A stretch of DNA of 64,000 nucleotides from Chlorokybus atmophyticus. Its lineage: Eukaryota; Plantae; Mesostigma and Chlorokybus algae. The position numbers were made by a program, and so were the translations under genes. The notes under the pieces were generated by a model. The model saw only the letters and a list, made by a program, of their open reading frames with translations. It had not been told where the DNA came from and made no database searches. The stretch is from contig RHPI01003488.1 of assembly GCA_009103225.1 (NCBI GenBank), positions 186,001 through 250,000 on the forward strand, in the 5' to 3' direction. Shown one piece after another: positions 1 to 36,575 of this stretch. The first letter of the stretch is position 1; each line of letters begins with the position of its first letter.

Positions 1-65
1 TTATCGTTGTACGAGCGCCCTGTTTTACTTCACAATTGTTCATGGACGCTGACACACGTGTGCAG

Positions 66-18088: not shown

Positions 18089-20836
18089 TCACTTGCGCCT
18101 ATGCACACGGAGCGGAACTCCATGCTTTGGCTTCAGCACTAGGCTAAGCGCCACGGGAAGCTCATTATGAAGAGTAGAAAACGTGAAGTTCTGCAACAAC
18201 TTCACAAGCGCCAGCTTCGCCTCTTGCTGAGCAAATCTGTGTGATACAGCCACTTGGCATGAGCACCAACAAAGAGATTAAAGATTTCAGTTGCCGACCA
18301 ACAAGTTGGCAATATACACCAACAGCAAGCTGTACAGCATGAAAACCACAATAACACAACATAACCAGCTCGCCGCACCTGTAGCCGATGCACTTGCGCG
18401 CTCCCATCCCAAATGGCACATACGCATCGGGGCTGCGCTTCTTAAACTCCTCGCTTGCAGGATCAAACCGCTCGGGTCTGGACAACAAGTGTGATTTGTG
18501 ACAGTTCATGCCATGATGTTGGTATTATATGAAGATTTTGAGACGTATATACCGCACAGTGATATGCACAACACATACCGCCTGCGGCAGACAATAACAC
18601 AACTTAACAACAGTTTACATCCACTACATTACCTGAACTCGAGGGCATCCTCACCCCACAACTTGGGGTCGCGGAATATTGAGTACAGATTGATCAATAA
18701 GAATTGGGGCTCAGAAATTGTGTACCCGCCTAAGGTAATAGGCTCGCTTGTTGCTTCGCGAAGGAGCGCCGACGCCGTTGGGCTGATTCGCATGGATTCT
18801 TGGACCACCTGGACAAATAGAATGGCATGGAGTCAAGCACATAATCAATTCAAACAAACCAACGTGCAACAGCTGTGAAAGCAAGTGTACTGAACTTTGA
18901 CAAAAGTGCTGAGAGTATCTTACATATGACATATGACACTGTGCTGCATACCCAGTCAAGGTAAGAAAAGCGTTCGTGCAGCTCTTCCAGGGATGGAGTG
19001 CCTGGCCCATACTTGTCAATCTCTTCAATCAGCTTCCCTTGAGCGCTCTGGTTTGCAGCGAGATGAAACAGGGTGAAGGACAGCGTGTTGGCTGTCGTGT
19101 CGCTCCCTGCGAGTACCTACGCAAGAAGGGTATAGACATAAGTTACACCTGCCAGGCATGATGTGCGCTTGTGTGTAAGAGTATGCACTCGGTTGTGCAA
19201 AGAATCTCTTGTTTGTTTGTGGCTGTTTGAGGTGGGCATCACTCACAGCACCAACCGTGTTTCTGACTTACCAACTCGAATGCGGTTCCAAGCACAGTGC
19301 TCAAGGGAAGGGGACTCCCAGATTCTCTGTCTCTGGCATTCAGCATGAGCGTCAAGGCATCAGTCTCAGCATGAGTGGCAAGGTTCTTTTGCCGATCATC
19401 GACAAGAGCCTGTAGCTTCTGGCGCAGCGATATCTTAACCTGCACAGACAGATTGCCGATTGCATCGCAATGGTGAGCCTGCATTACATACGCAATTCAA
19501 GCACAACTCCACTCCATACATTATGAAGTTCGTGGTCGGAGGCCGATGGGAATCGGCGCATTATGTGATGCGCGCACATTGCTAGCCACTTCGGAAAAAG
19601 CAACCCAACGACAGTTGAAACAGGCGCCTGCACAGTTATGTAGAGTCAAATTGTGCCATGCTGTTACCTTCAACTTGCAAGCAAGGGAGTGAACTAAGCT
19701 TACAGTGAACTAAACTTACATCGGGACCTATTGATGTGAGTCGGATAACCCTGTCGCACAATCGCAGCAACTCATCGGTTTCTTTGCTTGCTTTTGAGGC
19801 GTCGAGCAGCCCAAACTCAACACCAAATGCAGATTGACCTGGAAAAGCAATAGACATGAGACACTAGCGCAACCTAGCACGCTCGTCTTCACTCGCATTG
19901 GAGAAAACAATCGGAGTGCCTTCCTGCACTTGCCAATGACTTCAATTGTGAGCTTGGTCATGTACGTGCTGACATCAACCTCTGCGCCATTCGGGATGTC
20001 GGCCTTCATTAACTTGATGAGAGACTCTGGACAGAAACAACACCAGTTAGCAGGTGCAGCAGTTCGGAAGATACATCCTGGCTAGGCACACACCTGCTTC
20101 ATGCGTCATCTTGTCATAGATGGTGGTAAGTGTGCTGGTATGAAACAGCGGCGTGACAGCACCGCGCTTCTGTTGCCAATCCTTGTCTCTGAGGACAAGC
20201 ACACGATGTCAATATCCCAATCCCATCCTCATCAACTCGGACAACTTGGACATTGGTTACCGCATGCTTGATCCCTTTACCAAGTGGTAGCGACAGTGGG
20301 CATGCTTACTTGGCAAAGACCATTCCCTTTTCTGAGGGCCCGAACGCTTGCATGAACGCCTGGTCTGGTCGATTCCTGAGGGCCCGCGCATACTTGGTGT
20401 TGATCAGACGTACCATCTCTGGATCAGTGACAACGACGGCTGGCTTGTTGCCTACTCAGATAGACAAAGAAGTGTTTCCTTACAAGCAAGCTTGAGACCC
20501 TAGTGGCATGGCAAGCATGCAACCGGCACTACAGCGCTTTGCAACACACAAGCAAGCAAACAAGCAAGAAACAAAGCAAAGAAGCTGGCAGGGTTGCGAC
20601 GTGAACCTGACATGCTTACCTTGCATGAAGCAGTAGATGGGTCCATACTGCTTGAACCACCTGTCCCACAGGTTGAGGGCGTTCTCCTCTTTCGCGAGGT
20701 CGAGCGCATTGCCGAGGAGCCACAGGGGCTTCGGTCCGGGCACCCCGCGCGGGCGCCGCCACGCCGGCAGGGAGCCCAACACCCAGACCGTGGCGGCGAA
20801 CAGCAAGAACAACCCCGCCGCTGCCGCCAGCAACAT
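18089..20836 (-). CDS. Cytochrome P450, CYP711 (MAX1)-like clan
   Basis: N-terminal TM and PGPKP hinge; I-helix LAGSDTT; EIDKYGP...[18 protein letters not shown] (ExxR); PERF; heme motif [11 protein letters not shown]; stop TGA at 18089-18091. Confidence 0.92.
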
Positions 20837-22149
20837 GGTGGACACACACTGCGCTGCCACTGGGTGGTGCTTGGACTGGACTGGACTTGTCGTCAGCCTT
20901 GGCCGACGTGGATGACCGCTTGACACTGTCACTTGACAGAGGCAGACAGACTGCCTGACGCAGCCCAGCCTCAGTAACGCTGTGCCGCTGCCTGGGTCTA
21001 GCACAACACCTCTACTCATTGCATACATTCACATGCAAGTCTGGCCAAACACACGGCCAAAGGTGTGAGTTGTAAGATTTGCAAGTGGTTATGAAAGTGG
21101 CAAAGTCTTGTCATAAACATTGATGGCAATCCTCCCCTCCCTCCCTCCCAAATAATGACGACATTCTCAACCTACGAATCCCAAGATGCAATTGAGAGTA
21201 CAATTGCACTTGAACCAATTGCTTCACAAAACTTACAAACAATGACTAATATTTACGCTTTGAAAAGGTACGTTAATTTACACTATATTAAACGTATTGT
21301 TCAATCGAGTGTCTTATTGAAACATGATACCGTATTTACGAGGGACAATTACATGCATGCTTCACACAATTTTGTTGTTGAGTGATACTAGCAAATTTCA
21401 ACGTAATCACATCACATATGTAATGCACGTCTGACAAGAATTATATATGTGATGCATATGTGATAAGAAGTATGTACTGGAAGTTCTAGATTGAAACCAT
21501 CCTTCACACACTACATCACTACATTGATATGTGCACGTAACAGGTGTGTATCGCTTGCTTTAACTTACGTTAAATATATGTCATAATATGTTAATATCAC
21601 CAATGGCCCATTGGCACAATGGGTATACAATCGAATATTGTGCGAGTTGACCATCAAAGAGCTGATTTCACAAATATGTTGGCGCATCATAGTCCAATGT
21701 GAATTGCCAATATTAACATGATCAATGAAGCATCACATCACATTGGCATAAGCGACAAAGACTGCTGCATTGGATTGCAGCACAGTTACCGCTGCCTTTT
21801 ACATTACACCTGCCTGCTGATGGCATTGCACATAGCTTGTCCACCAACACCACCCCTGACCGCCTCCTTCAAACTATTGCTGGTGGTGAGGTTTCACATG
21901 ATTGCGTGTGCTGCATGCCCAGCACTTTCAGCAGGGTGTACCTTGGTGAAGGTTTTGGCATCGATGGCCAGCCTGATTCCAGGCACACCAATGGGACAGT
22001 GCGAGAATAATGCAAACAGCACAGCTAGTAACTCGCGGACTCAGTGTCCAAATTCTGCTAGTTGGGTAATACAAGTGCAAGTAGTATAACCGACTTGTTG
22101 TTAACAACAACTTTGAGCCAGCTGAAAACTAAAGGCATGGCTCCATTAG

Positions 22150-24438
22150 TTACGCTTCCAATACTTGGACATCACCATTCTCTATTGTTGCGTATATGGT
22201 CTTGTCCGCGGCAGCAGCGCCCACAAATAAGCCTGCGCATAGTTATGTGAGTTGCATAACAAAAAACACGCTCTGGTGCGCAGTACCATTTCATTGCAAG
22301 GCCAAACTTTTCATGCCCACAACAACCTGGGTAACATACCGTTTTCAATAACACCGGGAATTGCGTTGATGTCTTTCTCAAGCTGGACAGGGTCTGAGAT
22401 GCCGCCTTCAAACCTGCTCATGCCACATGTACACATGGACAATCATATTTATGCGTCACCTGACAATGGGCCATTCCCAACAGACAAGACAAGTTGGCAG
22501 TGAGTAGGTACCTGACATCGACCACCATGTTGCCAAGATCCGTAATAACAGGCCCGTCCTTCTTAACGGCATTTCGGATGGTTGGCTCTGCAACATCCAG
22601 TTCAGCATACAACTACCGCATACTTGTCACAGCTGTCGCTCCCAAAACAATCCATGATGACTTACCACCGCCCAAAGCAGCAAGCGCACGCAACACTGGT
22701 GTCAAGGCACCCGGCAGAACCTCAACCTGCACAACACAAGAATTGCTGTATGTACACTGTGCAGTAGGAGGCTAAGGTATGGATGGATGGCAGCATGTCA
22801 GCTTACTGGTACGGGAAATGCCAGCCCTAACTTCTTGACTAGTTTGGTGAAATCGGCTATCACATAAAACTGCTTGGCATTCGCGTTGACGACCTGCGCA
22901 TAGACTCAATCAAGGTGAACTCTCACCTCATCATAACAAGATGACACATTTCATCACGACAGCCTGTACCTTCTCCATCGTGTGGGCAGCACCACCACCC
23001 TGCCGTAGGTCAACATTTAGCCATCTTGTTTGGATGAATGCTGGAATGCAAGACTGCAGTCCGCATACACAACATGTGCTACGTACAACTTGCCCTTCAC
23101 ACACGCTGACAACCGTGTCCATTGCGCAGTGCTTCACCTTGATGAGATGCTTGTTTTCATCAATCTCATCCGCTCCATCCACTGCGAGGTCAATGGAGGC
23201 AACATCGTTGAGAGACACCTGCAGCATCAGGTGGCGCAACACAACCTCAACAATGAAATAAGCTTGCCAGATTGTAGCAACAGCAACACACAACAGAGTC
23301 GCACCGTTGGTACGCCATACTGTCTTGCTAGAATATTCGACTGGTAGCTGGTCACCACCACCTTCACGTCTTTTAGCTGCAAAGCAACACAGTCAAACAC
23401 CGCTGGAAGCTGTACAGAAACACTGGCAACCGTCAAGTCTGCGGAATATACTCATATGACTGAAGCCATTCATGCATACACCCTGCGCCTCAAAGGCAGA
23501 TGCATAAGCAACGCAGCCAGCGGGCAATACACACCTTGCCACCCTTCAATTGTTTGCCTATCTCCTCAAGAGCATATGCTGCTGTGCTGCCAGTGCCGAT
23601 GCCCACTACCATACCCGACTTGACATACTTGACAGCAGCCACTGCAGCCTGTAAACGTTCAGCTGTGAGAATGTGTGGCCCATGTAGAAGTCGCAAACGC
23701 CCTATCCCAGGAACTGAGCCACACTCTCTTACCGCTTGCTTCATCTTCTCTCGATCCGCGCTGCTCACTGTTGAACGACATCGCATGAATTAGACAATAT
23801 AACAGAACTTCCACTCTGTAACATTAAGAGCATGCAACGGCGTCGTGTCTACAGCTCCTTTGAAGCACGTATAATTACGCAACTATGGCATATCCGAGTG
23901 AGCCGCATATTGCTGTCTAGAAGTGTGTGCGCACCACTTAAGCGCATGCATTCCCAAGTCCACCAAGAGGTAAACTGCAAGTGCTAGTTTTATGAAGTGT
24001 CAACTTCTCCGCGGAGATTACTGCTGCATGCTGTGCAATATCTTGCAAATCTGACACGGGGCCAGTATCGCCAGATCAAAGTTTGCAAGTGGCGGACTAC
24101 TGCCCAAAACACCTCTTCTAACTGAAATGCACTAATTTATGCGCACTCCTTTCCTGCATTAGCCAAATGCACTGACCGCGTGTAGTTGTGGCGCCCTCAA
24201 TGGCGACAGCCATTGTCACATGCGGTGTCGACCGTCCTGACGCCCTGGCGCCGCCCACCAACGCCACAAGCTCATTCTTTCTCCGGCTGCCATGCAAGCC
24301 GCTAGCCTTCACTGCTGAAAGGCCAGACTGCAGCCTGGCCGCACGCGGCTGTGACGCAGCTTGGGCGCACAGCGTCGCCTCTGCATGCTGCTGCCGAAGC
24401 ACGGCACCCGCAAAGCTCTGCACTGCAGTGCCCACCAT
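22150..24438 (-). CDS. RPI: Ribose-5-phosphate isomerase A, probably plastid-targeted
   Basis: Transit-like first exon; [56 protein letters not shown]; stop TAA. Confidence 0.95.
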
Positions 24439-24778
24439 GGTACAGCACCCTCAACACAATATATCAAACACGCTTCCAACAACCCTGATGACCGCAACCT
24501 CAACGACACGCCCACCACCGCCGCCGCCACCGCCGCCTTCGTCAACACTGTGTAGCTGCCATGCTGTAGGCTCAGCTAACGAATCGGGCGCTGCGCGCTC
24601 AGGACCGATGCCCGAATGCGGGAATCACAGGCCTCTCTTAGCGTGCGCACCCCAGCGGGGCGGCTTGTGATGAGATCCAGAATCGCGGCGCCCTTCAAAA
24701 ATAATGGGTGGGCGTTGGTGCGGCAGATCGCACTGTGATTGTGCGCATGCCGCACTACAAGGCGGGCGGGAGAGCAGG

Positions 24779-24788
24779 TTAGGGTTTT
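24779..24788 (+). promoter_or_regulatory. Telo-box-like motif (TTAGGGTTTT) in the divergent promoter between RPI and the B3-AP2-SET gene
   Basis: Single copy of AAAACCCTAA (reverse strand) in the head-to-head intergenic region. Confidence 0.35.
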
Positions 24789-25376
24789 GACTAAGTGAGG
24801 CATCCGGGGAGGGTGTGTGTTTGGGTGTGGGTGGGTGTATGGGTGTGCCGGACAGCCTCAACATGTTGGGTGTGTGAGGGCAGGCAGTTGAGTATTGTGA
24901 CAATCGCAGAAGCAGCAAAGGTGAGAGTCCCTGCATGCGTCTCGTGTCAGTTCATTGCGAAGCTGCTGTCGCTGCGCTACTGCTGCTGGTGTTGGCGATT
25001 GCTAAGCTGATTCTCAGCGTGTAAGCTCATTGAATTGAAGCCCGCTGTTGGGTCCCCCGTCCTGCTTGCAATGCAAGCAAAGCGCTGTCAGTTTGCAAGT
25101 GCATGCTTTGACCTAATCCACCAATGCAGCATGCATGGCACAGCACCTGCTCGTTTGCAACTCAAGTTTGCATTCCGTCGTACATGAGCTTGTTCTGCTT
25201 GCACAGCAAACATGCCTGTGCGACCTCCCCTACCCTTTGCGTGCTCACACATGCTGGCAGCGGCTTGTTGCTCTTTCAGTGCATGAGAGACTTTACTTGC
25301 ACGCGACAGGTAGCATGCAGTTGACATCGTGCTGACCCAAAACGTGTTTGCAGCGTGGCGGACGCAGCTGCTTGTG

Positions 25377-28300
25377 ATGGAGGCTACGCCTGGCCGGGAC
25401 AATCTGGACATGGACGACCTGCCGGAGTCATCAGACACAAGCTCAGACTCGGCAGCTGCGCAGTTGTCTGGGTACTTGGACACAGAGCCACTATTAGAAG
25501 TTGCTGACAGTCTAGAGGCACAACAGCAGGCTGCTCCATCCATAGCTTCTACTGCGGGATTGCCAGCACCAGTCTCCACAGCGCCACTCATGCCTGGAGG
25601 GACACCTCTGGAAGTACCACTTGTTGGCACAGTTGACCCTGCCACTTCTGCTCAGGTACTGGCAGTAGTCATTGGCTATCCTTGTCAGCTTGCAAAAGCT
25701 AGTTCAGTACTTGAACAACGAAGTGTACGAGTATGCTTGTCTGCTGGTTGCATACTGTTGTCAGGTGCTGGTGTTGGCACAGGGCAAGGGAGTGCAGAAG
25801 GTGTTGTCCGTGAGCGACTGCAAGCAGACACTCTGCGTGCCTTCTGCGTTTGCAAGGAGGTACCTGCCTTCTGTCCCAGTGGACGTGCCTGTGAAGGTGA
25901 CCTTGGTGGACGCTTCTGAAACAGGAGAGGTTTTCACTGTCACATACCTCTACCGCAGTCAAGCCTTTTCGCACATTTTTTCCACCGGCTGGCCACTGAT
26001 CTGTCGCAAGTTCTGCTTACAGCCTGGGGACTTGTTTGAACTGACACCACCGAACAGGTACATTCACTTGTGTGCATGGCTGTTGCACAGCTGGCATCAA
26101 CAGTGCTTATTTCAATATGTGAACTGCAGGGAGGGGCACATACCTATAAGGTTCTCAGCTGGGCCTGTTCGAGAAGTTCTGACTGCTGCTAAGGAAGGGC
26201 GAAGCACTCGTTCCAAGAACACCCCTCACCAGAGGTCCAGCAATATGCTTGGCCATTCACCAATCAGCGCTTCTGAAGCAGAGCCTGCAGCTCCGTTGCA
26301 CAACGGGACGGTGAGCGGCTGCAAGCTGGAGAACAGACACCCTACCACCACTTTGTGTTCACACCTCGTTTCATCACTTCTTTCATGCATGTGCAGGGGC
26401 CTGCTGCCGTAAAGCGCCTGACCCATCAAGACTGTGCGTCATCACTTGTGCTGCCAGTGTCATACGCCCGGTCACAGTTACCAGACGCTGAGGAGGACCA
26501 AGACCTGGTCGTTGCTGATGTTGCAAACAATGACCACCAGTGGACAGTGACATACTCCATGAAAGGGGCTCCAAACTTCTACTTGCTCGTGAGAGGTTGG
26601 CCAGATGTCGTCCAAGACTTGCAGATTCTGGCTGGTGACTTCATTGCGCTCTACCCCCTTGACAGGTGCGTGTTGCTGAGCAGGTTTAAAGAACTGCATG
26701 GCACTGTCACGGTGTATGTGCGCCGTTTCTTTAATGGTCTGCATTGCAGCAATGGACATGTTCCGATGGCGTTCATACGATCAAGTTCGGATGCACCCCG
26801 TGAAGGGGTGGCAGCAAGCAGCAAGTCAGCACAGGCCTCGCACAACACTATCGTGACCAACGGCAATCATGTGGAGGTAATGTAACTGTTGCATATGTTG
26901 TGGTTTGCTTAACGTGTCGCTGTGCAATCTACACACAGCAGCTACACATTGTACTCAATTGCTAGGTCACAGTGACGTTTGTCAATACATGCATCCGGCA
27001 CAAGCGCGTGTCGTCATGGGCGCTGCATGAATCCGCACTAAACAGTTGCGTCGGGTTTTGTCACAAGCACTGGTTCCATGGACGAATGGATTCAGCAAAG
27101 CTAGCAGGTCAAACCTGAGAGTTGCACATATATGTGCTAGTATAGATACCCTGTGCATAGCAGTTTGTTGTGCAACATGCTTTTGTACCACCCTACTAGC
27201 GGGCAGCTATCTGCCTGCTTGCAACAGACCTAGATAGCTGCAAGGGGTGCATGTGTTGGCTGCCCATTGTTGGCATCAATAAGATAAGCTATCAATCTGG
27301 ACTTGCAGGGAGGCGGAGAAGTTGTAAAGCAGCTGACCGCAAGTGACTGTCGAGTGTACCTGATCATGCCATCTGTGTACTCTCGCACATACCTACATCC
27401 ACCCGGCGAACTTGAGGCTCGACTGCTAGAGGTTGTTGACGTGGACAATCCGACTCAAACTTGGACTGTTCGATCTGTGCATAAACGCGTCGCCAACTTC
27501 TACTGTCTAACAAAAGGCTGGTTGAGCCTTGCGCGTGAGCAACGCCTTATCCCAGGCGACTATATCACCATCTTTCCACTCGACAGGTTGGTCAGTATGC
27601 ACTGCCCTTGCCTTGCTTCGCTCACAAACACGGCGCCGTTCTGCGTCATTGAGTCAGCTGTTGGCAGTCATTGCGCTTGCACCAACCATGTGCGGCTGTT
27701 AACTGTACAACCACACTTACCAAGTTGCTCATGCGTTTCCGCCTCCCTTTCCTTCCCACAGTCAGGGTCGCATCCCTATGCGGTTGGCAGGGACTGGCAG
27801 GGAGGACGCCGTAGCTGGAGAGCCCGAGGCTGGTGCTAACAAGTCGAGCGCGGCCGATTCCACTCGCAGGCGATGGGGCTCAGCCTTGCCCAAGCTGCAG
27901 TCTGCAATCTTCGACATCGCAGACAGGTGAAATTGCCCTCATACTCTTCTGCTCTGTTGTACAGCTTGTGGTTGACACGCAAGTCCAACAAGATTTGCCT
28001 TGTGGTGGTGAACAGGCTGCCAGAGTCAGCAGTGCGCAACCCAGCTGCTTCTGTTTGGATTGCCTTTGCCCGGCGGATACGAACAGCAAAAAGACCGAGC
28101 GCAGTTACGCGAGCGGCTGCTTGGCTTCAAAGTCAAATTGTCGATGACGTCTTGAATACTGTGTGGCTGGCAGAGCGGATGGAGTGGTAAGCACAGCTTG
28201 CCAATGTGAAGCATGATAACAGCGCACAAAAGTTAAGCTGTTTTCATGGAGTGGAATCGTGTTTCAACCATGGGACAGGACAGTGCAATGCAGAGCATGC

Positions 28301-31046
28301 AGAACTGTGCGCGACGCCAAAGACCTCGTAGCAAAACTGGAGGACGCCATCAACTGGGAGCTGATCCAGCCAGGTCCGGAGTCAGAAAGTGAACCAAGGA
28401 CAGCACAGGTACACTTTATGCAGAACAAAATATTGTGCAGCATGCGACACGCACGTGGACAGACGTATGCATCCTTGCTCTCACGCACGCACGCACGCAC
28501 GCACGCAATCACAATAGTCAATGAAGCTACTACGGGCAGGCAAACAGCAAGAAGTTGAGCAGGCTGCGGCGATTGGGAATACAGAAGGGCATTGGGCCGT
28601 CAAACAAGCGCGCACATGCTACGCAGCTGCGCAATTTGCCTCCTCTAACAGGCACAAGCGCACTGCCGCCAGATGTCACACTTCTTTTTCAGACCCAGTT
28701 GCTAGCTGCTGACTTAACGCCGGGCTGCACAGCAATTGAGGTATGACTCCGTAGCGTGCGTTGTTGACAGTGCAGGCAATTGACACACCTGTACTGCAGC
28801 TCCCGCGCGAGGACGTGTTGCAACACATCATGCCTGCGCTCACAAACCCCACAACAGATGGCGACCTTGTCTCATACAGCCTCTGCCTTGTGGACAGCGT
28901 CAGCAGTGCGGACATTGAGTTTCAGTTGACAGGCATCGCGGACCTGCACTCAGACATGTAAGTCCCATCGTCACTAAGTGGTGTTCTGGTATTGTACAAA
29001 CATGTCACAATGCATGCAGGCCGTACTCCCTCGGGAAAGGCTGGCAACAGTTCAACGCAACACATGACCTGCAGCCCGGAGACTTTCTTCAGTTCTGTCG
29101 CACACCGGCAGGTCACTTGATGCTCGCAACTCATCGTCAGCCTCAGGAGCAAACAACTACAGCAAGCGCTCCCGCAAGAGCACCGCCGGTAGTGGAGGCT
29201 ACATCCTTGGACGCCAGCAATTACAGAGGCATTGAGAGCAAAGTGGCCGGCAGGTGGCGAGCAGTTATAAGACATCGTGGAGCGTACGTTAAAGTTGGCA
29301 TATTTACCACGGCAGAGGCCGCAGCCCAAGCGTACGACAAACTGGCCATTCACATGTGCGGCGCTGGCGTCCCTTTGAACTTCCCCGCGGCAAACTACGA
29401 AGCTGAGTGGAACAGTTTGCTGTGCATGCCTTTCAATGAGCTGCTGGAAGCATTGCGGCAGGACTCAGTGGCACCATCAATGGCTGGCGTCAAACGGCCA
29501 CCACCAAGCAGCCAACCCGCCGAAGGCACGAAACGTCGCAGGGGCTGTGCTGGCGGCAGTTTAGACACTACCGCTGATGAGCACTACACGGACAAAGAGG
29601 AAAGGTTGAGACCGGTATACGAGGAAGAGTTGGCAAGGCCTTGCCATCATTGCTGGGAAGACAACGTTGAAGCCAGCTGCTCTCCTGAAGATTGCGGTTT
29701 CACGTACATCAAGGACCGGTTTCTCAGTGCTGCTGCACGGAGTGCAGTGGACGGACATAGCACGAATGCACACAGCTTGGATGTGCATGCGTCACCAAAC
29801 GACGATGATGACCTCGGATATCCATCGCACACAGTTATTGCATTTGATCGGCAGTGTGGCTGCAGTCCTGAGATACAGGTACGAGTGCAAAGCAAGTTGT
29901 ATGTCGCATAGGAAACTCACATACAATGTGCATTGCGGGTCCACTATGGTGCGCACAGCGCCTCTTCTGCTTGCTTACTGCTGGACAAACTTGTAGGATT
30001 TGGTACCGGGCGGGTACTCAGATGAGTGCGCTGGTCAGCGATATGCACGCATGTCAAGCATTCCGTTCCCAGTCAGAGTGTTCAGCAGCAGTGACGGTCG
30101 CACGCATGGCGTGCGCGCTATGACACACATACCAAAGGGGTCGATGGTAATGGAGTATGTCGGTGAGGTATGTGTTCAAGAGGTACACTTGCTCTGCAAC
30201 TGCCTTGTGCCACATAGCCGGGTGATTGTCCTGGACAGGGGCACTGCCAGATGCTGACTTGCAAGAGCACTGTAGCGTTGTTGCTTGTGACATGTACATC
30301 ACATGCATCTTATTGGCCTTTCAAGCCGCAGCCAGATTGTGATGCATGCAACACAAGATGAATACCTGATGCCTGCTGTCACATGCAAACGCTTAAACTG
30401 CCTTTGTGCCAGGTAATAATTCAGTCCGAGGCATGCGAGCGTGAGAAGGCCTATCTGGCGGAAGGTAGACAGAATTTTCTCTTGGAACTTTCCGAGTCTC
30501 AAGCTAGTGGCCGCCAATTCACCGTGGATGCGACCCATGTTGGGAACATTGCACGCATAGTGCGATCCTCGAGCGATGGTGGCAACCTCAAGGTAACACT
30601 CTGTTGCTGCACAGCCGGTTTTAAATATTAGGCACTACTGACATACCATGAATTGCGTATCTTGCTTCATTGCATAGGCGTACTATCATGCACTTCAGAC
30701 TTGGCACGTGCGGGGTAAGCAAGGCAAGAGGGCTGCATGTAGTTTGGGTCCATTGCGCAGCTGACTTCATATTGATGCTGTGACAACCGAATTGCTGATG
30801 CAAATCACAGCATCGACTTATGTCTTATTTGTTATCTGATTATGTTTGCAGACATACGAAGTCTGCAGTGCGGGTGGGTTGCCACACCTCATGTCTTTTG
30901 CAAGGGAAGACATCGCCCCGGGAGAGGAACTGATCAGCGACTACCACCTGGTTGGCAGTGAGGGTAGGGGAAGTGACAGGGGAGATGGCAGCGGTAGTCC
31001 TGTGTGCACGAGAACAGCACACAAACATTTGCTAGCACCACTATGA
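25377..31046 (+). CDS. Multidomain chromatin/transcription protein: B3-B3-B3-(WHIM3-like helical region)-B3-AP2-Cys-rich-SET(degenerate), ~1220 aa, 15 exons
   Basis: Exons 25377-25655, 25783-26057, 26130-26310, 26397-26665, 26750-26876, 27309-27586, 27762-27926, 28016-28186, 28279-28408, 28540-28740, 28776-28957, 29020-29878, 29997-30167, 30413-30592, 30852-31046 are all GT-AG and phase-compatible (3663 nt). Four B3 signatures (K.L..SD...L..P..Y....LP; GW......L..GD), AP2 (NYRGI...GRWRAVI...GIFTTAEAAAQAYD...LNFP) and SET (GVRA...IPKGSMVMEYVGE; VDATHVGNIAR; GEELISDY). Confidence 0.85.
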
Positions 31047-31517
31047 AGCGGTAAATGGGTTGAGTGTTCCCTGCGCTTCTGTTCTGTTGCAAGCAAGCCT
31101 ATCAACATAAGTTGGCAGGGAGCAGCATATGCTGATGTTTTAGGCAGCATTCACAGCACTTGCCTTCCTGCCTGTTGTGTGAGTGAGATGATGTACAACT
31201 GAGCGATTATCGCAAGCACTACGCAAAAGCCAGTGATGCGGCTCTTGGAGCCGTGCATCACAAGCCACATGCACAAACCGCACATGCATCAGTCTTGCAT
31301 ATGCATGTGCAACCGATGCACTTTGTGGCACTCACAGCATGTTTCTCGACGTCGCTATCGCCAGCAACACAATTAGCAAAGCACACGATACAGTAGGTTT
31401 GAACGGTGCACTCACAACCTATACAATATGTACCTCATGTTTGTTGCGACAATCTTGTTTTATTCAGGGCACACGAACTACTACTAAGTTTACAGACTGT
31501 GCGAAAGTACACTTCTC

Positions 31518-33711
31518 CTACGACTCCTCCGCCTCATCTGCATCCTTCAGCAGACGTGTTGCTTGCCGCGACACTTGGCCGACCACCACAAATGTCGCGC
31601 CCAAGCCCACCTGCCCAGTATGTCAGCACACGCACATGCACCCGCACCAAGGGCAACAACCTACCACATGACAGGCAGAATTGTAGACTATGAGTGACAG
31701 AGACGTGTTGACTTACCACTGTTAGCACAGTTTGCACTAGCGACTTGTCGCCAATGCCACCTATAGACCTGCGGCGTGCATTCATGTTGAAACTATGTAA
31801 GGGTAAAGGCGATATGTTGTTACCAGTTGTATTGAGTGCGTCGCAAGGTGTACCTTCCGGCGCCTCCAAGATACACATATGCGAATGTGGCAGGCAGCAT
31901 GCCAACCCAAGAAGCAGCAACATACTGGACGAGACCAACCTTTGTTAAACCAAACCTGCACAGGCAAGGTGAAGTGAGACGAGCCCAACGCAGAAAGCAA
32001 GCTGCCACAATGTTTACATGTAATTGGAAAGGCTGAATGGCAAAAGTGGCGATAGCCTTAGCAACAAAACAGCTTTCCACCCTTCATCAGCAATTGCTTT
32101 GTCCACCGCACGAAATCTGCCAGCCGGAAGTGTTATAGCTGCAACCACCGTTGAAACATACTCACATGCATGCTGTCAGCACCGATGGCCATGTTGACTA
32201 ACCTTCTGTTGCCTTCAATAAGTTGTGACAACTGCGGACGAGCAACATAACGCGAGATGATGAACGCCAAGGTTGCTGCATGATACACATGCGCGTGAGC
32301 ATACAAGTGGCCATGCGCATATTCTGCAACTGATCACATTTAGGGGATGTACTCAAGTGAGCTATGACAGTTGTTGGACACCTGTTGACTGTGAAACCAA
32401 ACCTTTTTAATGTATGGCGGACTCACTATGTCATACTCACCTGCAGTTGTTGATGATGCGGACACAACGGCTGTGCCAACAGCCGGTCCAAATATAAAAC
32501 CTGCCCAAATTGGTTAGACCTTTGAAAGCTTCTGTTTGCCTGCAACTCAACCACCAGCTTACCTGCGCCTATAGTCAATGGAGAGGCCGGTAGGAACAGT
32601 AGTGACAGTGCAATGTATGCAGCTGCGAAATACACGTAGCCCAATGGTCCGGCATCATCCACTACATGCTGTATCGACTGTGCATCGCATGCACAACCTC
32701 AGTACTTCAGGACAAAGCCAGTACATATTGCTGAGCACTTCACAAACGGCAACAACTAGAGCAGCGAACGTACCTTCAGCACATCAGAGGGATCTGGCAA
32801 GCCGTTTGTCGAGATGTACACGACTGCAAGTGTTGCCAGGGAGGCAAGAACGACTGCGCAGCACATGATATGATTGTACAAAGTGACACATTGAGGACGC
32901 TGCCAGCATGAAGCTGAATGCGGCACTGGATGCAGCACAACTCGCGCCCATGCAAGGTGTGCACTAAGTTACCAGCAGCAGCTATCAACTTGCTCCTGGG
33001 GCTTTGCACTGCAACGGCCTCCATTGTCGTCTCATCGTCCGAGGTCAATAGCGAACTTGCTGCACAAACGTAATTAGGTACATTGCACATGCGAAGTGGT
33101 TGTGCGGCACGGTCACCCTCAAGTGCATAGGCCAGTTACGCTGCCAAGAGAGAGAACGTGTTTGTACCTTCATCATCCTCAAGCTCCTCTGTAGCCATGC
33201 GATCGTTGCGCTTCCCTGCCCCCGCCAGTATGACACCGTCCAGGCGCTGCAGGTTCACGTTATGTGATGGTGAGAACAAGTGTCCTATCATGGACACAAA
33301 GACAATCAGCCCAAACCCAACGAGACAAACTGCTGCAGCGCAATGCAGTAGGCATTTACCATGTCCTTGGCACAGACTGGACGAACACTGCATGCCGCAG
33401 TGACTACGCTTGCGTGCATGCACCCAGCACAATGAGGCAAGCATGCAGCATGCTACTTCATGGGCGGTGACTGAGGTGTCAGGCACAGTGATGTTACCTG
33501 AGAGGAAGCAGCCGTCAGGGCCAGCAGGTGCAGCAGCAGCACCACCGAGCCGCCCAGAGCTGGAGACCGCAGCAGCTCCTCCTCCGGCTGCTGCGGCTGC
33601 TCCTACCCCTGGCCTGCGCAGGCGAGAGCGGCGACAGGCCGCCGCGGCCGTGCTCGCCGCCACGGGCACCACCATCCTCCCTGCCGCCGCCGGCGCCGCC
33701 AACACCAACAT
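31518..33711 (-). CDS. TVP38/TMEM64 (VTT / SNARE-associated) membrane protein with transit-peptide-like N-terminus
   Basis: LFLPASPLTIGAG-FIFGPAVG...-ATLAFIISRY...-RFRAVDKAIADEGWKAVLLLRLSPLLPFSLSNY-FGLTKV...YVAASWVGMLPATFAYVYLG; stop TAG at 31518. Confidence 0.92.
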
Positions 33712-34121
33712 CCGCGCCACGTCGACACGCGCACAGCGACCACTTCGGCAGGATCAGCTCAGTGGGCACAAGCTTGCTAACTCGACTGGCTTGCAAGTAG
33801 TAGCGTCAAGCTTCTTACGTCTTTGTTGTCAGCATCTGCAAGCTCAGTACGGTAGCGAAGCTGCGCACAACAAGCCTCACGCTTACGTTGAAGGCAAACT
33901 CCACACCTTTTGGTCAAGCTGACAGCAGGCTGAAAGCAGGCTAAACCCTGAGCTTGAGCTCTAGCTCTATTCTGTGCGCAGGGCAAGCTCAAGCCAGAAG
34001 GCCAGGAACCAGTGCAAAGTTTCCAGCATCTATAGCCAGGCTCAAAACTCGAGCTTCAGCCAAGGTCAAGCTCAAAAGTCAGCTTGCGCAGTGGCATAGC
34101 GTTTTTGCTTGGAGCAGCAGG

Positions 34122-35718
34122 ATGGCGGAGCGGCGGCGGGGGAGAGGGAGGCGGAGCCCGAGCCCGTCGCGGAGAAGGCCGGGAAAGGGGAGGAGCAGGA
34201 GCCTGAGCCCCAGCCCGCCCAGGCGAAGGGGCAGGAGCAGCGATAGGAGCAGGAGTCCCCCTGTTGGTCGGCGGCATGGCCGCAGGGACTCCCCATCGCC
34301 TGACAGAGGCGGCCGCAGGGAGGCGGCAAGGCGTGCCTCTCCTGAGCGACTGGTGAATGTCAGCACAGAGGATCTGTATGCCAGGGTCGCTGAGATTGAG
34401 CTGAGACAGAAGGTAAGCATGTGCTTATGTGTCGTTGCACAGTTGATATGCTTGCTTCGTTTGTGCAGCGGGATGCAAGCTGAATGAAAAAATGCATTTT
34501 TGTCTGTACATTTTGCACTCTACTGAAATTCACTCTGGTAAGTAACCTACAGTTGATGCTTATACGCACGCATTCTGTCGTCAATATCCAGTACTGCAAG
34601 AACTTGTAGATGCGTCGTTGCTGGCTGTGTTTGCGTGCTATCCAGCCAATGGTTGATACGGCTGGATAGCAAGGGATGATTTACATTGCAGTGCAGACCG
34701 GCTTAACTGCAACTAACATGATGCTTCTTGGAGTGTCAGCACTAGCCTGGTTGGCGTGTCGTGTACGTTGCAAAGGTCGCATGCTCAGTAGCAAGTGTGC
34801 GTGAATGTTGAATACAGCAGCGATATGCTGCAACGCTTGTTACTATAAGGTGAAAGGTGAAACGGCGTCAGTATTCCGTCATGTTGCAAACGGTTGCAGC
34901 AACCTTAAAGTCAACTGTGGGTATTTGTCGCACCAATGCAGCGAAACTCTGGCAGTGCTCGCATTTCACAGTTTTTGCATGCCGTTGTATAGTGTACTAT
35001 CAAACAGGCGTACCAGCAGCATAGCGAAGCGTCATCCTTGGAGGATAGCTTGCGGGCCGTGAATGCAAGCAACAACGTGTGCGTGCACTACTCCATTGCA
35101 TGCCTCCTTCATATCTCAAACCCACCTGCCTCTGTCGTAGGCACTCAAGAACATGCTGAAGCGATTGGGCGCGCCAGATGATGACGTCGCTCGACCATTG
35201 AGCCCGGTACAGCAGAACGGTGTGCACAGCAACCGAAGCCCCTTGGGTGAGGAGGCGGTAGCACAGGTGGAAGACAGCAACTTGAACAGTCGGGGCAACC
35301 CTGGCTCAGAGGAGGACACGCCGCTCTCATATGGCTTTGATTCCCCTCAACAAGACCCTGCTGAAGCAGCTGCTCTGAGAGGGGAAGATGTTGGTGATGA
35401 AAGGGACCAACCGCATGATGATGAGAGAGACGTGGCTGCTGAAAACCCAGAGGATGCTTCCAAACATGCACGTTCCAACAACATGCACAAGTCAAGTCAG
35501 GATGAGTTTGAACAGCGGACATTCGTTGCCACCAAGAATGGGGAGGAAGTCAAGGTAGGTTGTCGTGCATGAATGTTGACTGCCTTGGGTTGTTCCAATA
35601 CATTGCGCTGCTAGCTCTGGCTGTAAGCACTTACAGGCAACTGTTGCAGGTAAACTACACGGTACACATACCCGAGAGGGCAAGACAACGCGCACTGGCA
35701 CGAAAGCTCAAGAGATAG
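34122..35718 (+). CDS. Arg/Ser-rich (SR-like) protein of unknown function, 3 exons
   Basis: RSPSP/RSRS-rich exon 1 ending EIELRQK|GTAAGC; acidic exon 2 (35141-35554); exon 3 (35650-35718) VNYTVHIPERARQRALARKLKR*; phases all 0. Confidence 0.65.
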
Positions 35719-36575
35719 CTGCAGCAGCGTACAGCCATTTTTGTTTTCACAGATGTGGTTGTTTGCTCAAGTTTTGCCTAGCTGTTAGGCGACTTATAAG
35801 CTGTTGCGCCTCAATCAGCCGCTGTGATCAACATGCTGGCATAGTGTCCTCTCGCCTCTCTCGTGCAGTAGTACAGATGCCTCGCCCCATACCGGTGTGC
35901 GTTGTATGTAGCTATGTTCATCATCGACATTGCAATGCGTCAATGGCAATAACAGTATGCAGCATCTGCAAGTGAAGTGCACACACGCTTGCCACTCCAG
36001 CTCTCAGTACAGCGCGGCTGCACAATCCGGTCTTGCTGCTGCATGTTATCCATACCTAGAAGTCACTGCAATACATACTTATTCTGCACTAACATCGGTG
36101 CGCGCCGAACCAATGCATGAGAAGGTAGGCAGGCTGACTGCATACCATCCGCCATGCGCTTGGCAGTAACAGTGATACAAGACGCAAACGCACTCCTACA
36201 TCGCATTGTTTGTGCACATATGAGGCTTAAAATCTTTTCAACACAGGCAACACGTCCGCTACAGGGACTCGCATGATGTGGGCGTTTCAGTCCGGCGCAA
36301 CAACCACGGTCACACACCGCTACAGCCGGTCCGTGGCGTTGTCCCAGCATTGCCCGATTTTTGGCTCGTTTACCTATCCTACACATTGCACACAGCACGA
36401 CGTCTCACCTCCGTGTGCGCGCTTGCAAGGTGGCGCCCTGTGCATGCGATGGAACGGTCTGAGCCGAATGGCGGCGGTCTGCCGTGCCCAGGGCGAGGCC
36501 GTTTCGTTGCGGCTGCTGTAACTTAGTCGGAGAGTGAGCCAGGTCGGCTTGAGAGAAGGAGGTGCGGTGCCCTGC

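Follow-up and report, generated by a model that had tools for sequence, protein, structure and literature searches.

Among DNA-binding domains, B3 and AP2 are the hallmark of plant development and hormone signalling, and land-plant B3 factors silence genes via separate SET-domain complexes that they recruit. Does one gene of the alga Chlorokybus join such domains in a single protein, and what would its SET domain do there? An earlier note on this locus had proposed a fusion of four B3 domains, an AP2 domain and a SET domain, and had suggested a search for its architecture among chlorophytes; the host is in fact a streptophyte alga. The locus was analysed in a window of 64,000 nucleotides, which is the whole stretch of DNA considered here.

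A single spliced mRNA

Joined in frame, the 15 GT-AG exons of the earlier note give 1226 codons with a single terminal stop. One spliced RNA contig of 3815 nt from run X1 spans 25352-31110; the 14 coding introns are absent from it, and its 14 GT..AG joints leave an ORF that is continuous from exon 1 to exon 15. Twelve of the 14 proposed introns are exactly equal to those of the RNA. For the other two the acceptor had been misplaced, in both cases in frame: intron 1 (25656-25782) leads into an exon 2 that starts at 25783 and not at 25765, which shortens the protein by 6 aa, and intron 10 (28741-28799, 59 nt) into an exon 11 that starts at 28800 and not at 28776, which removes another 8 aa. The 35-nt intron 10 proposed before is unused in RNA. 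The RNA-supported protein is 1212 aa long, and a stop codon lies in frame upstream of the ATG at 25377.

Run X2, which comes from another study (2013) and is independent of X1, confirms six joints (26876/27309, 28408/28540, 28957/29020, 29878/29997, 30167/30413 and 30592/30852), among them every junction from the fourth B3 domain (B3-4) to the stop codon. Spliced RNA of the gene is present in both data sets, in each case as assembled contigs rather than single molecules. The depth of X2 rises toward the 3' end and is higher on exons 12-15 than on the B3 block; an extra, shorter AP2-SET transcript may accompany the full-length mRNA. The locus is a single nuclear Chlorokybus gene, transcribed and spliced into one mRNA, as had been claimed. 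The domain order of its product is B3-B3-B3-unassigned region-B3-AP2-Cys-rich-SET, which agrees with the order first read except that the region between B3-3 and B3-4 has no assignable domain. The features are as follows (all on the forward strand, +).

24834..24920, +, 5'UTR exon (85 nt or more seen) that contains a short uORF; followed by intron 24921-25353 with GT/AG borders; based on an 85-letter overhang of the X1 contig ahead of 25352, placed in the window at 24889-24918
25354..25655, +, exon 1; ATG at 25377; N-terminus (aa 1-93) acidic and Ser/Ala-rich, no Pfam match
25783..26057, +, exon 2, B3 domain 1 (aa 94-184); joint 25655/25783 in X1; Pfam B3 33.3 bits
26130..26310, +, exon 3, final strand of B3-1 (EGHIPIRF) and linker; RNA joints and alignment
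26397..26665, +, exon 4, B3 domain 2 (aa 246-334); Pfam B3 39.5 bits; RNA joints
26750..26876, +, exon 5, final strand of B3-2 and linker; RNA joints and alignment
27309..27586, +, exon 6, B3 domain 3 (aa 378-469); Pfam 27.0 bits; joint 26876/27309 in X1 and X2
27762-27926, 28016-28186, 28279-28408 and 28540-28740, +, exons 7-10: final strand of B3-3, a stretch of about 190 aa (aa ~483-668) to which no domain can be assigned, and the start of B3-4; RNA joints, 28408/28540 also in X2
28672..29140, +, divergent B3 domain 4 (aa ~670-785), on the end of exon 10, exon 11 and the start of exon 12
28800-28957, +, exon 11, between intron 10 (28741-28799) and intron 11 (28958-29019)
29020..29878, +, exon 12, which encodes the C-terminal half of B3-4, the AP2 with its linker helix, a basic KRRR stretch and Cys-rich sequence; unbroken in X1 and X2 contigs
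29216..29392, +, AP2 domain (aa 811-869); Pfam 23-27 bits; phmmer matches to WRI1 and AtERF1
29393..29464, +, AP2/ANT-type linker helix NYEAEWNSLLCMPFNELLEALRQD, aligned to the WRI1 repeat-1 linker
29642..30040, +, Cys-rich region, CxxCx8Cx4C ... CxC x15 C, 7 Cys; crosses intron 12 (29879-29996)
29997..30167, +, exon 13, start of SET; GRTHGV for GRGWGV, VMEYVGE kept; donor 30167 in X1 and X2
30413..30592, +, exon 14, central part of SET; joints seen in both X1 and X2; SUV39H2 alignment
30563..30574, +, RSSS at the NHSC position of active SET domains; HMMER alignment to SUV39H2, SUVH6 and SETMAR
30852..31046, +, exon 15, last part of SET; Tyr of EELISDY conserved, followed by a Gly/Ser tail that lacks a CxCx4C post-SET; stop codon 31044-31046
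to at least 31110, +, 3'UTR; X1 contig

The four B3 domains

The protein belongs to the B3 superfamily (PF02362) by profile scores above the Pfam gathering cut-off of 30.1 bits: the whole protein scores 103 bits over three stretches, and B3-1 and B3-2, each taken as a single exon, exceed the cut-off (33.3 and 39.5 bits). B3-3 is slightly under it on the truncated exon alone (27.0 bits). These three domains have an intron in common, at the same position and in the same phase, and their pairwise identity is only 26–38%. Since B3-1 and B3-2 pass the cut-off and B3-3 falls just below it in spite of this low identity, the three domains have probably long been maintained. They would have arisen when a unit of two exons was duplicated in tandem within the gene.

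For B3-4 the Pfam match is weaker (20.5 bits, E 4.8e-4) and is restricted to the C-terminal half, as is its hhalign match to B3-1..3 (E 1e-4, 57%). Its language-model features score 0.93 and 0.91 to B3 and At2g31720-like clusters respectively. The C-terminal half of B3-4 and the AP2 domain are both encoded in exon 12, in line with the single exon first assigned to this pair. The approximately 190 aa that separate B3-3 from B3-4 give no Pfam match and weak scores in the language-model atlas.

The AP2 domain and its linker helix

The AP2 domain scores 23–27 bits in Pfam (PF00847), below the curated cut-off of 33.3, and it is assigned to the AP2/ERF superfamily by its matches to AP2 domains of known structure and not by this score. 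With phmmer these are WRI1 (7.1e-14), AtERF1 (2.9e-7) and the AP2 of TEM1 (5.8e-4); 394 library proteins match at <1e-10. The earlier note had expected PF02362 four times, PF00847 and PF00856: three B3 stretches and the SET were recovered, while B3-4 and AP2 fall short. Its AP2/ANT-type linker helix is confirmed by alignment with the WRI1 repeat-1 linker (phmmer, query 160-230 vs chain 32-102). No second AP2 repeat was found in the protein by Pfam or phmmer. In the phmmer alignment several DNA-contact residues of AtERF1 differ in the Chlorokybus domain; DNA binding by this AP2 is therefore not assured.

The SET domain and its motif losses

The SET domain is well above the Pfam (PF00856) gathering cut-off of 22.4 bits: it reaches 38.5 bits when the whole protein is searched and 41.4 for the C-terminal piece. 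Its nearest matches are SUV39H2 (7.8e-9), SUVH6 (1.1e-6) and SETMAR (5.3e-6), then Clr4 and KMT5A, and it aligns along its full length with SUV39H2. In these SUV39-type alignments (HMMER; SUV39H2, SUVH6 and SETMAR) the AdoMet-binding NHSC is RSSS and the GWG motif is THG. The exon that carries RSSS and both its junctions are supported by RNA, with zero RNA/DNA base differences. The post-SET CxCx4C is absent, a single Cys (aa 1200) being found between EELISDY and the stop, and Pre-SET (PF05033, Zn3Cys9) gives no Pfam match at E up to 10. The Cys-rich region before the SET has only 7 Cys, spaced unlike the Zn3Cys9 of Pre-SET, and aligns partially to SUVH6, SETMAR and Clr4 directly upstream of the SET; it would at best be a pre-SET remnant. 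The catalytic Tyr of ELxxDY and the EYVGE strand are retained.

SUV39-type enzymes depend on NHSC, GWG, pre-SET and post-SET. Rea et al. in 2000 are said to have abolished the activity of SUV39H1 by mutating the NHSC His. Given that NHSC and GWG are lost, that there is no post-SET and that at most a pre-SET remnant is left, the Chlorokybus SET is probably not an active methyltransferase. Inactivity does not follow with certainty from the loss of NHSC, since PR-type SET domains do without the canonical motif and there are active ones among them, e.g. PRDM9.

These losses bear directly on the targeted writer, akin to PRDM9 or SETMAR, that the earlier note had inferred, i.e. an active self-targeting histone lysine methyltransferase whose B3 and AP2 domains choose the sites and whose SET writes the mark, as a plant-lineage counterpart of PRDM9. 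In its favour are the Pfam score and an alignment that is SUV39-like overall, with the EYVGE strand and the Tyr of EELISDY conserved; some SET/PR domains also function without canonical NHSC. But such a writer needs an active SET, and with RSSS for NHSC, THG for GWG, no post-SET and no Pre-SET match, all features on which SUV39-type enzymes depend, we regard it as unlikely; an adaptor role like that of SUVH2/9 fits this pattern better. It is quite improbable that the protein is a self-contained, sequence-directed chromatin modifier whose SET either still methylates through a non-canonical cofactor pocket or binds and holds a histone tail. If it were, the PRDM9 design would have been invented a second time, independently and from plant-lineage DNA-binding domains alone, and the protein would be a cis form of the VAL-PRC2 and VRN1 partnerships between B3 factor and SET enzyme that land plants run in trans.

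The motif losses, and the lack of a relative with the same architecture in the searches made, could also be those of a plain transcription factor in which only the B3/AP2 part works and the SET is a neutrally decaying relic of exon shuffling. We hold this for quite unlikely: a neutral relic should gather stops or be spliced out, whereas the SET frame is open across three correctly spliced exons, scores well over the Pfam cut-off and keeps its full-length alignment to SUV39H2.

A putative DNA-binding adaptor

We thus favour, with moderate confidence and by analogy, a DNA-binding factor with several binding modules whose pseudo-SET serves as an adaptor in the manner of SUVH2/9. The modules would be five: three duplicated B3, the divergent B3-4 and one AP2 with its AP2/ANT-type linker helix. 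This array would bind DNA, probably at composite or repeated motifs, much as RAV and multi-B3 proteins do; the pseudo-SET would offer a docking or histone-tail-binding surface and bring chromatin or transcription machinery to the sites that B3 and AP2 choose. The protein would then be a SUVH2/SUVH9-style adaptor in which sequence-specific B3/AP2 domains replace the methyl-DNA-binding SRA.

SUVH2 and SUVH9 of Arabidopsis likewise combine a DNA-binding module with a SUV39-type SET as non-methylating adaptors, a likeness that is functional only: they have no detectable HMT activity, their catalytic site is dispensable and they recruit Pol V (PMC3898904). The Chlorokybus SET is nearest to SUV39H2 and SUVH6, and the post-SET is missing in both cases. 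SUVH2/9 nevertheless have an SRA for methylated DNA, a pre-SET and the His of NHxC, whereas the Chlorokybus protein has B3 and AP2 in place of SRA (no Pfam match to SRA on the whole protein), has lost NHSC wholly and gives no Pre-SET match. The pre-SET, NHSC and post-SET of H3K9 methyltransferases of the SUV39 type (SUV39H, Clr4, DIM-5, SUVH4-6) are all wanting in it.

Comparison with other B3, AP2 and SET proteins

RAV proteins (RAV1, TEM1 and algal proto-RAV such as KnRAV), which are present in early streptophyte algae (PMC6797205), also carry AP2 and B3 in one chain, and the B3 of RAV1 and TEM1 rank with the best matches that B3-1 and B3-4 find in the PDB. The order is however different, four B3 preceding AP2 in Chlorokybus vs an N-terminal AP2 and a C-terminal B3 in RAV; moreover the Chlorokybus protein lacks PB1, has an AP2 of the AP2/ANT type (repeat plus linker) and carries a SET in addition. 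WNSSQS, the RAV-type B3 signature in the DNA-contact loop (PMC6797205), is absent: in the RAV1 alignment YRSQAFS of B3-1 stands opposite it, and B3-4 has HSDMPYS.

REM/VRN1 proteins share the several tandem B3, and by language-model features B3-4 is nearest to REM-like (At2g31720-like) clusters, but REM proteins contain B3 only, without AP2 and SET. The earlier note had given multi-B3 (REM) proteins as described from land plants; they are no longer held to be confined there, a REM clade tracing back to the Viridiplantae ancestor (PMC11685440). Within the AP2 subfamily (WRI1, ANT, AP2), WRI1 is the best solved match, its alignment extending through the inter-repeat linker helix; the Chlorokybus protein has one repeat instead of two, and a basic low-complexity stretch after the linker.

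The animal proteins PRDM9 and SETMAR resemble it in uniting a SET-type domain with a DNA-binding array within one chain, the SET of SETMAR being also a significant sequence match. Their SETs are active and their DNA binders are zinc fingers or a transposase, whereas the Chlorokybus SET is without cofactor motifs and its binders are the plant-lineage B3 and AP2. In the VAL1/VAL2-PRC2 and VRN1 pathways land-plant B3 factors bring SET enzymes in trans. B3 is here too coupled to SET-domain chromatin machinery (among PDB sequences the B3 of VAL1 matches weakly), but in a single polypeptide instead of separate proteins.

No protein with the B3-AP2-SET architecture was found in searches of libraries of 5.8 billion and 1.8 billion proteins, in metagenome contigs or in the literature searched, in keeping with the earlier statement that none was known to have been described. 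No orthologue was retrieved, and the gene was retrieved from one genus only, Chlorokybus. The combination of four B3, AP2 and SET was found nowhere else in these searches; its component domains are known. The Chlorokybus lineage, which split at the base of the streptophytes, thus has B3/AP2 and SET joined in one expressed protein. This makes it a test case for the shuffling of plant transcription-factor domains with chromatin modules before land plants, for whether the green lineage evolved chromatin marking directed by DNA sequence, as animals did with PRDM9, and for the conversion of SET domains into non-catalytic adaptors.

Gene boundaries and public annotation

Two adjacent genes, one multi-B3 and the other AP2-SET, merged by read-through or contig assembly, would agree with the assembled nature of the RNA evidence and with the higher X2 depth on exons 12-15. 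This is nevertheless highly improbable: one contig holds all the GT..AG junctions of exons 1-15 with a continuous ORF, and neither an in-frame stop nor a start structure lies between the blocks. Nor does any gene boundary fit, because B3-4 is split over exons 10-12, exon 12 also encodes AP2, and the Cys-rich/SET part is split over exons 12-13. An origin in a transposon, carried or domesticated, is hardly credible either, with no terminal inverted or direct repeats flanking the gene within 20000-36000, no second copy within the window, ordinary genes in the flanks (ribose-5-phosphate isomerase and a piece of a P450), and 14 spliceosomal introns besides a normal one in the 5'UTR.

Two structure predictions reached pLDDT 35 and 31 and gave no usable model. 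In the public Chlorokybus annotation the gene is present as one protein of 1211 aa, Chrsp32S04928, already labelled with Pfam B3 and SET; VMEYVGE of exon 13, missing from that model, is present in the RNA.

Gene structure and transcript

The gene under study and its main features are:

25377-31046 (+), gene for B3-1, B3-2, B3-3, an unassigned region, B3-4, AP2, a Cys-rich region and SET
25783-27926 (+), exons 2-7, B3-1 to B3-3
29020-29878 (+), exon 12, with the C-terminal half of B3-4, AP2, its linker helix and the Cys-rich region
30147-30167 (+), conserved SET strand VMEYVGE
30563-30574 (+), RSSS of the SET domain

The window DNA is nuclear and eukaryotic (~52% G+C), and two public RNA sequencing runs, X1 and X2, the second from a different study and year, cover the locus. 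Compared with 25250-31200, X1 yields a single 3815-nt contig that corresponds to 25352-31110; all 14 of its joints are GT..AG, and its bases nowhere differ from the genome. Its first 85 nt form a 5'UTR exon ending at 24920. The main ATG lies at 25377 and is preceded by an in-frame stop. Six joints of the contig recur in X2: 26876/27309, 28408/28540, 28957/29020, 29878/29997, 30167/30413 and 30592/30852.

The 15 exons proposed in the earlier note do join: the reading frame stays open over 1226 codons and all introns are GT..AG. Of the 14 introns, 12 are reproduced exactly in X1. The acceptors of the other two were misplaced, both in frame: intron 1 ends at 25782, so that exon 2 starts at 25783 and not at 25765, and intron 10 is 28741-28799 with exon 11 starting at 28800, the 35-nt intron first proposed being unused. 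The protein supported by RNA thus has 1212 residues.

B3-4 extends across exons 10-12, exon 12 also carries AP2 and the Cys-rich part, and SET is joined to them by three confirmed splices; therefore no internal gene boundary can be placed. The locus is one real, expressed gene. There may nevertheless be a shorter isoform besides the full transcript, because the RNA evidence consists of assembled contigs, not single molecules, and the depth of X2 increases toward the 3' end.

Two further elements of the transcript region are a 13-codon uORF, MGVPDSLNMLGV, in the 5'UTR exon (24834-24920), in the same frame as the main ATG and closed before it, and a 5'UTR intron of 433 nt (24921-25353). Intron 9 contains an (ACGC)n microsatellite (28470-28515).

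Exon 12, used as query in an exhaustive HMMER search, retrieved a 1211-aa protein identical over the whole exon (100%), EukProt EP00898 Chlorokybus atmophyticus P004416, i.e. jgi/Chlat1/4976/Chrsp32S04928. This public model, from the genome of an early-diverging streptophyte alga published in 2019 (PMC7027972), already predicts a single gene, for which B3 and SET labels had been precomputed. It differs from the RNA at two places: its acceptor at 25765 adds six residues (25765-25782) where X1 supports 25783, and its donor at 30146 deletes VMEYVGE, while X1 and X2 both use the donor at 30167. The deleted strand has as its counterpart VMEYVGEVI in SUV39H2. Domain searches were run on single exons and on Chrsp32S04928, which has seven SET residues fewer and six extra after exon 1.

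B3 and AP2 domains

B3-1, B3-2 and B3-3 score 33.3, 39.5 and 27.0 bits against Pfam as single exons, and the whole protein matches Pfam B3 with 103 bits in three stretches. Each of the three occupies the same two-exon unit with identical intron phase, the B3 exon ending in phase 2 and the next one beginning x-G-H/R-I/V-P, which points to an internal tandem duplication. Because the copies share only 26-38% pairwise identity, the sequences point to an old duplication, yet a conserved one.

The evidence for B3-4 is as follows:

C-terminal half only, Pfam: 20.5 bits, E 4.8e-4
C-terminal half only, hhalign against B3-1 to B3-3: E 1e-4 (57%)
residues 668-795, language-model features: 0.93/0.91, B3 / At2g31720-like clusters

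B3-4 is thus a probable, divergent B3 domain. Between B3-3 and B3-4 some 190 residues (aa ~483-668) have no Pfam match and only weak atlas scores (0.67 at most).

AP2 stays under the Pfam cut-off (23-27 bits for 33.3). Against solved proteins it is matched by WRI1 (7.1e-14) and AtERF1 (2.9e-7), and the WRI1 alignment extends through the inter-repeat linker, in agreement with the AP2/ANT-type linker helix recognized by the earlier reader. No second AP2 repeat was found alongside this single one. Apart from the Chlorokybus protein itself, the matches listed for exon 12 (HMMER, 1.84 billion representatives) are all AP2 proteins, mostly with several AP2 matches. The nearest ones checked have multiple AP2 domains and come from algae, from protists and, in some cases, from land plants; they include:

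P0003, from a Picozoa single-cell assembly
P0004, from Cymbomonas
P0015, from Botryococcus

P0003 has a chromo domain in addition to five AP2 domains, so the joining of AP2 to chromatin modules is not confined to the Chlorokybus genome.

SET domain

SET scores 38.5-41.4 bits against a Pfam cut-off of 22.4, and its nearest matches of known structure are SUV39H2 (7.8e-9), SUVH6, SETMAR, Clr4, KMT5A and G9a. In the alignments RSSS stands opposite NHSC and GRTHGV opposite GRGWGV, and the Tyr of ELxxDY is retained. The post-SET CxCx4C is absent, the tail having one Cys; Pre-SET was not detected by Pfam, and the Cys-rich stretch holds seven Cys with a spacing unlike that of Pre-SET. RSSS is not an annotation artefact, because its exon and the junctions of this exon are supported by RNA with no base difference from the genome. 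Since SUV39-type enzymes need the NHSC His and post-SET, the domain is probably inactive as a methyltransferase. AlphaFold2 run without alignment gave meaningless models (pLDDT 34.7 for B3-4 plus AP2, 30.9 for SET).

Occurrence of the architecture

Queries with the whole protein, the SET region and the B3 block in a library of 5.8 billion proteins returned only the Chlorokybus protein itself. This search covered proteins of 0.55-1.75x the query length sharing 5-residue words, so the self-only result is not proof of absence. The B3, middle, Cys-rich and SET parts have no counterpart in any of the 149 other exon-12 matches listed (1.84 billion representatives), and metagenome contigs gave no match to exon 12 or to the B3 alignment. 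The main text of the Chlorokybus genome paper does not mention 'AP2', 'ABI3' or 'SET domain', and full-text literature searches for B3/AP2/SET fusions in algae returned nothing relevant. The claim that a B3-AP2-SET protein was undescribed thus holds for the protein libraries, metagenome contigs and literature searched. The domain architecture is one that we found described nowhere else; its component parts are all known, RAV-type AP2 plus B3 proteins and REM-type B3 domains being on record from algae (PMC6797205, PMC11685440).

Proposed function

The best reading, which we consider fairly probable, is a DNA-binding factor with a pseudo-SET adaptor (a SET domain without key catalytic residues), comparable to SUVH2/9, the inactive Arabidopsis Su(var)3-9 homologues. 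The B3/AP2 array would bind DNA, and the pseudo-SET would offer a docking site for partners in chromatin or transcription, or for a histone tail. SUVH2/9 have undetectable methyltransferase activity and a dispensable catalytic site, and act as adaptors recruiting Pol V (PMC3898904). The Chlorokybus protein would differ in that sequence-specific domains occupy the place held by SRA in SUVH2/9.

An active targeted writer appears unlikely given the replaced NHSC; some PR-type SET domains do function without this motif. Slightly more doubtful is a neutral relic: the motif losses would suit it, but the SET part stays in an open, correctly spliced frame over three exons and scores well over the Pfam cut-off. 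Two genes, or a transposon origin, are each very improbable, the splices running across the domains in the first case and, in the second, no inverted or direct repeats flanking the gene and no extra copies lying within the window.

Surroundings and possible sister-strain copies

No other B3, AP2 or SET copies were found elsewhere in the window. Upstream lie two pieces on the opposite strand:

20480-21025 (-), exon-sized piece matching the cytochrome P450 N-terminus (E 4e-4)
22931-23290 (-), piece matching ribose-5-phosphate isomerase A (E 2e-8)

X3, a public RNA sequencing run with the same organism label from another sample, contains a 231-nt contig (depth 97) that matches 27561-27601 (end of exon 6) and 27738-27787 (start of exon 7) with 95-99% identity, most of intron 6 being replaced by 137 unlike letters. 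This contig may be a diverged sister-strain copy, either unspliced or DNA. Words of exon 12 are present at 7% in X7, a run of the same study as X3, and at 3% in X3, which hints at sister-strain copies of ~90% identity.
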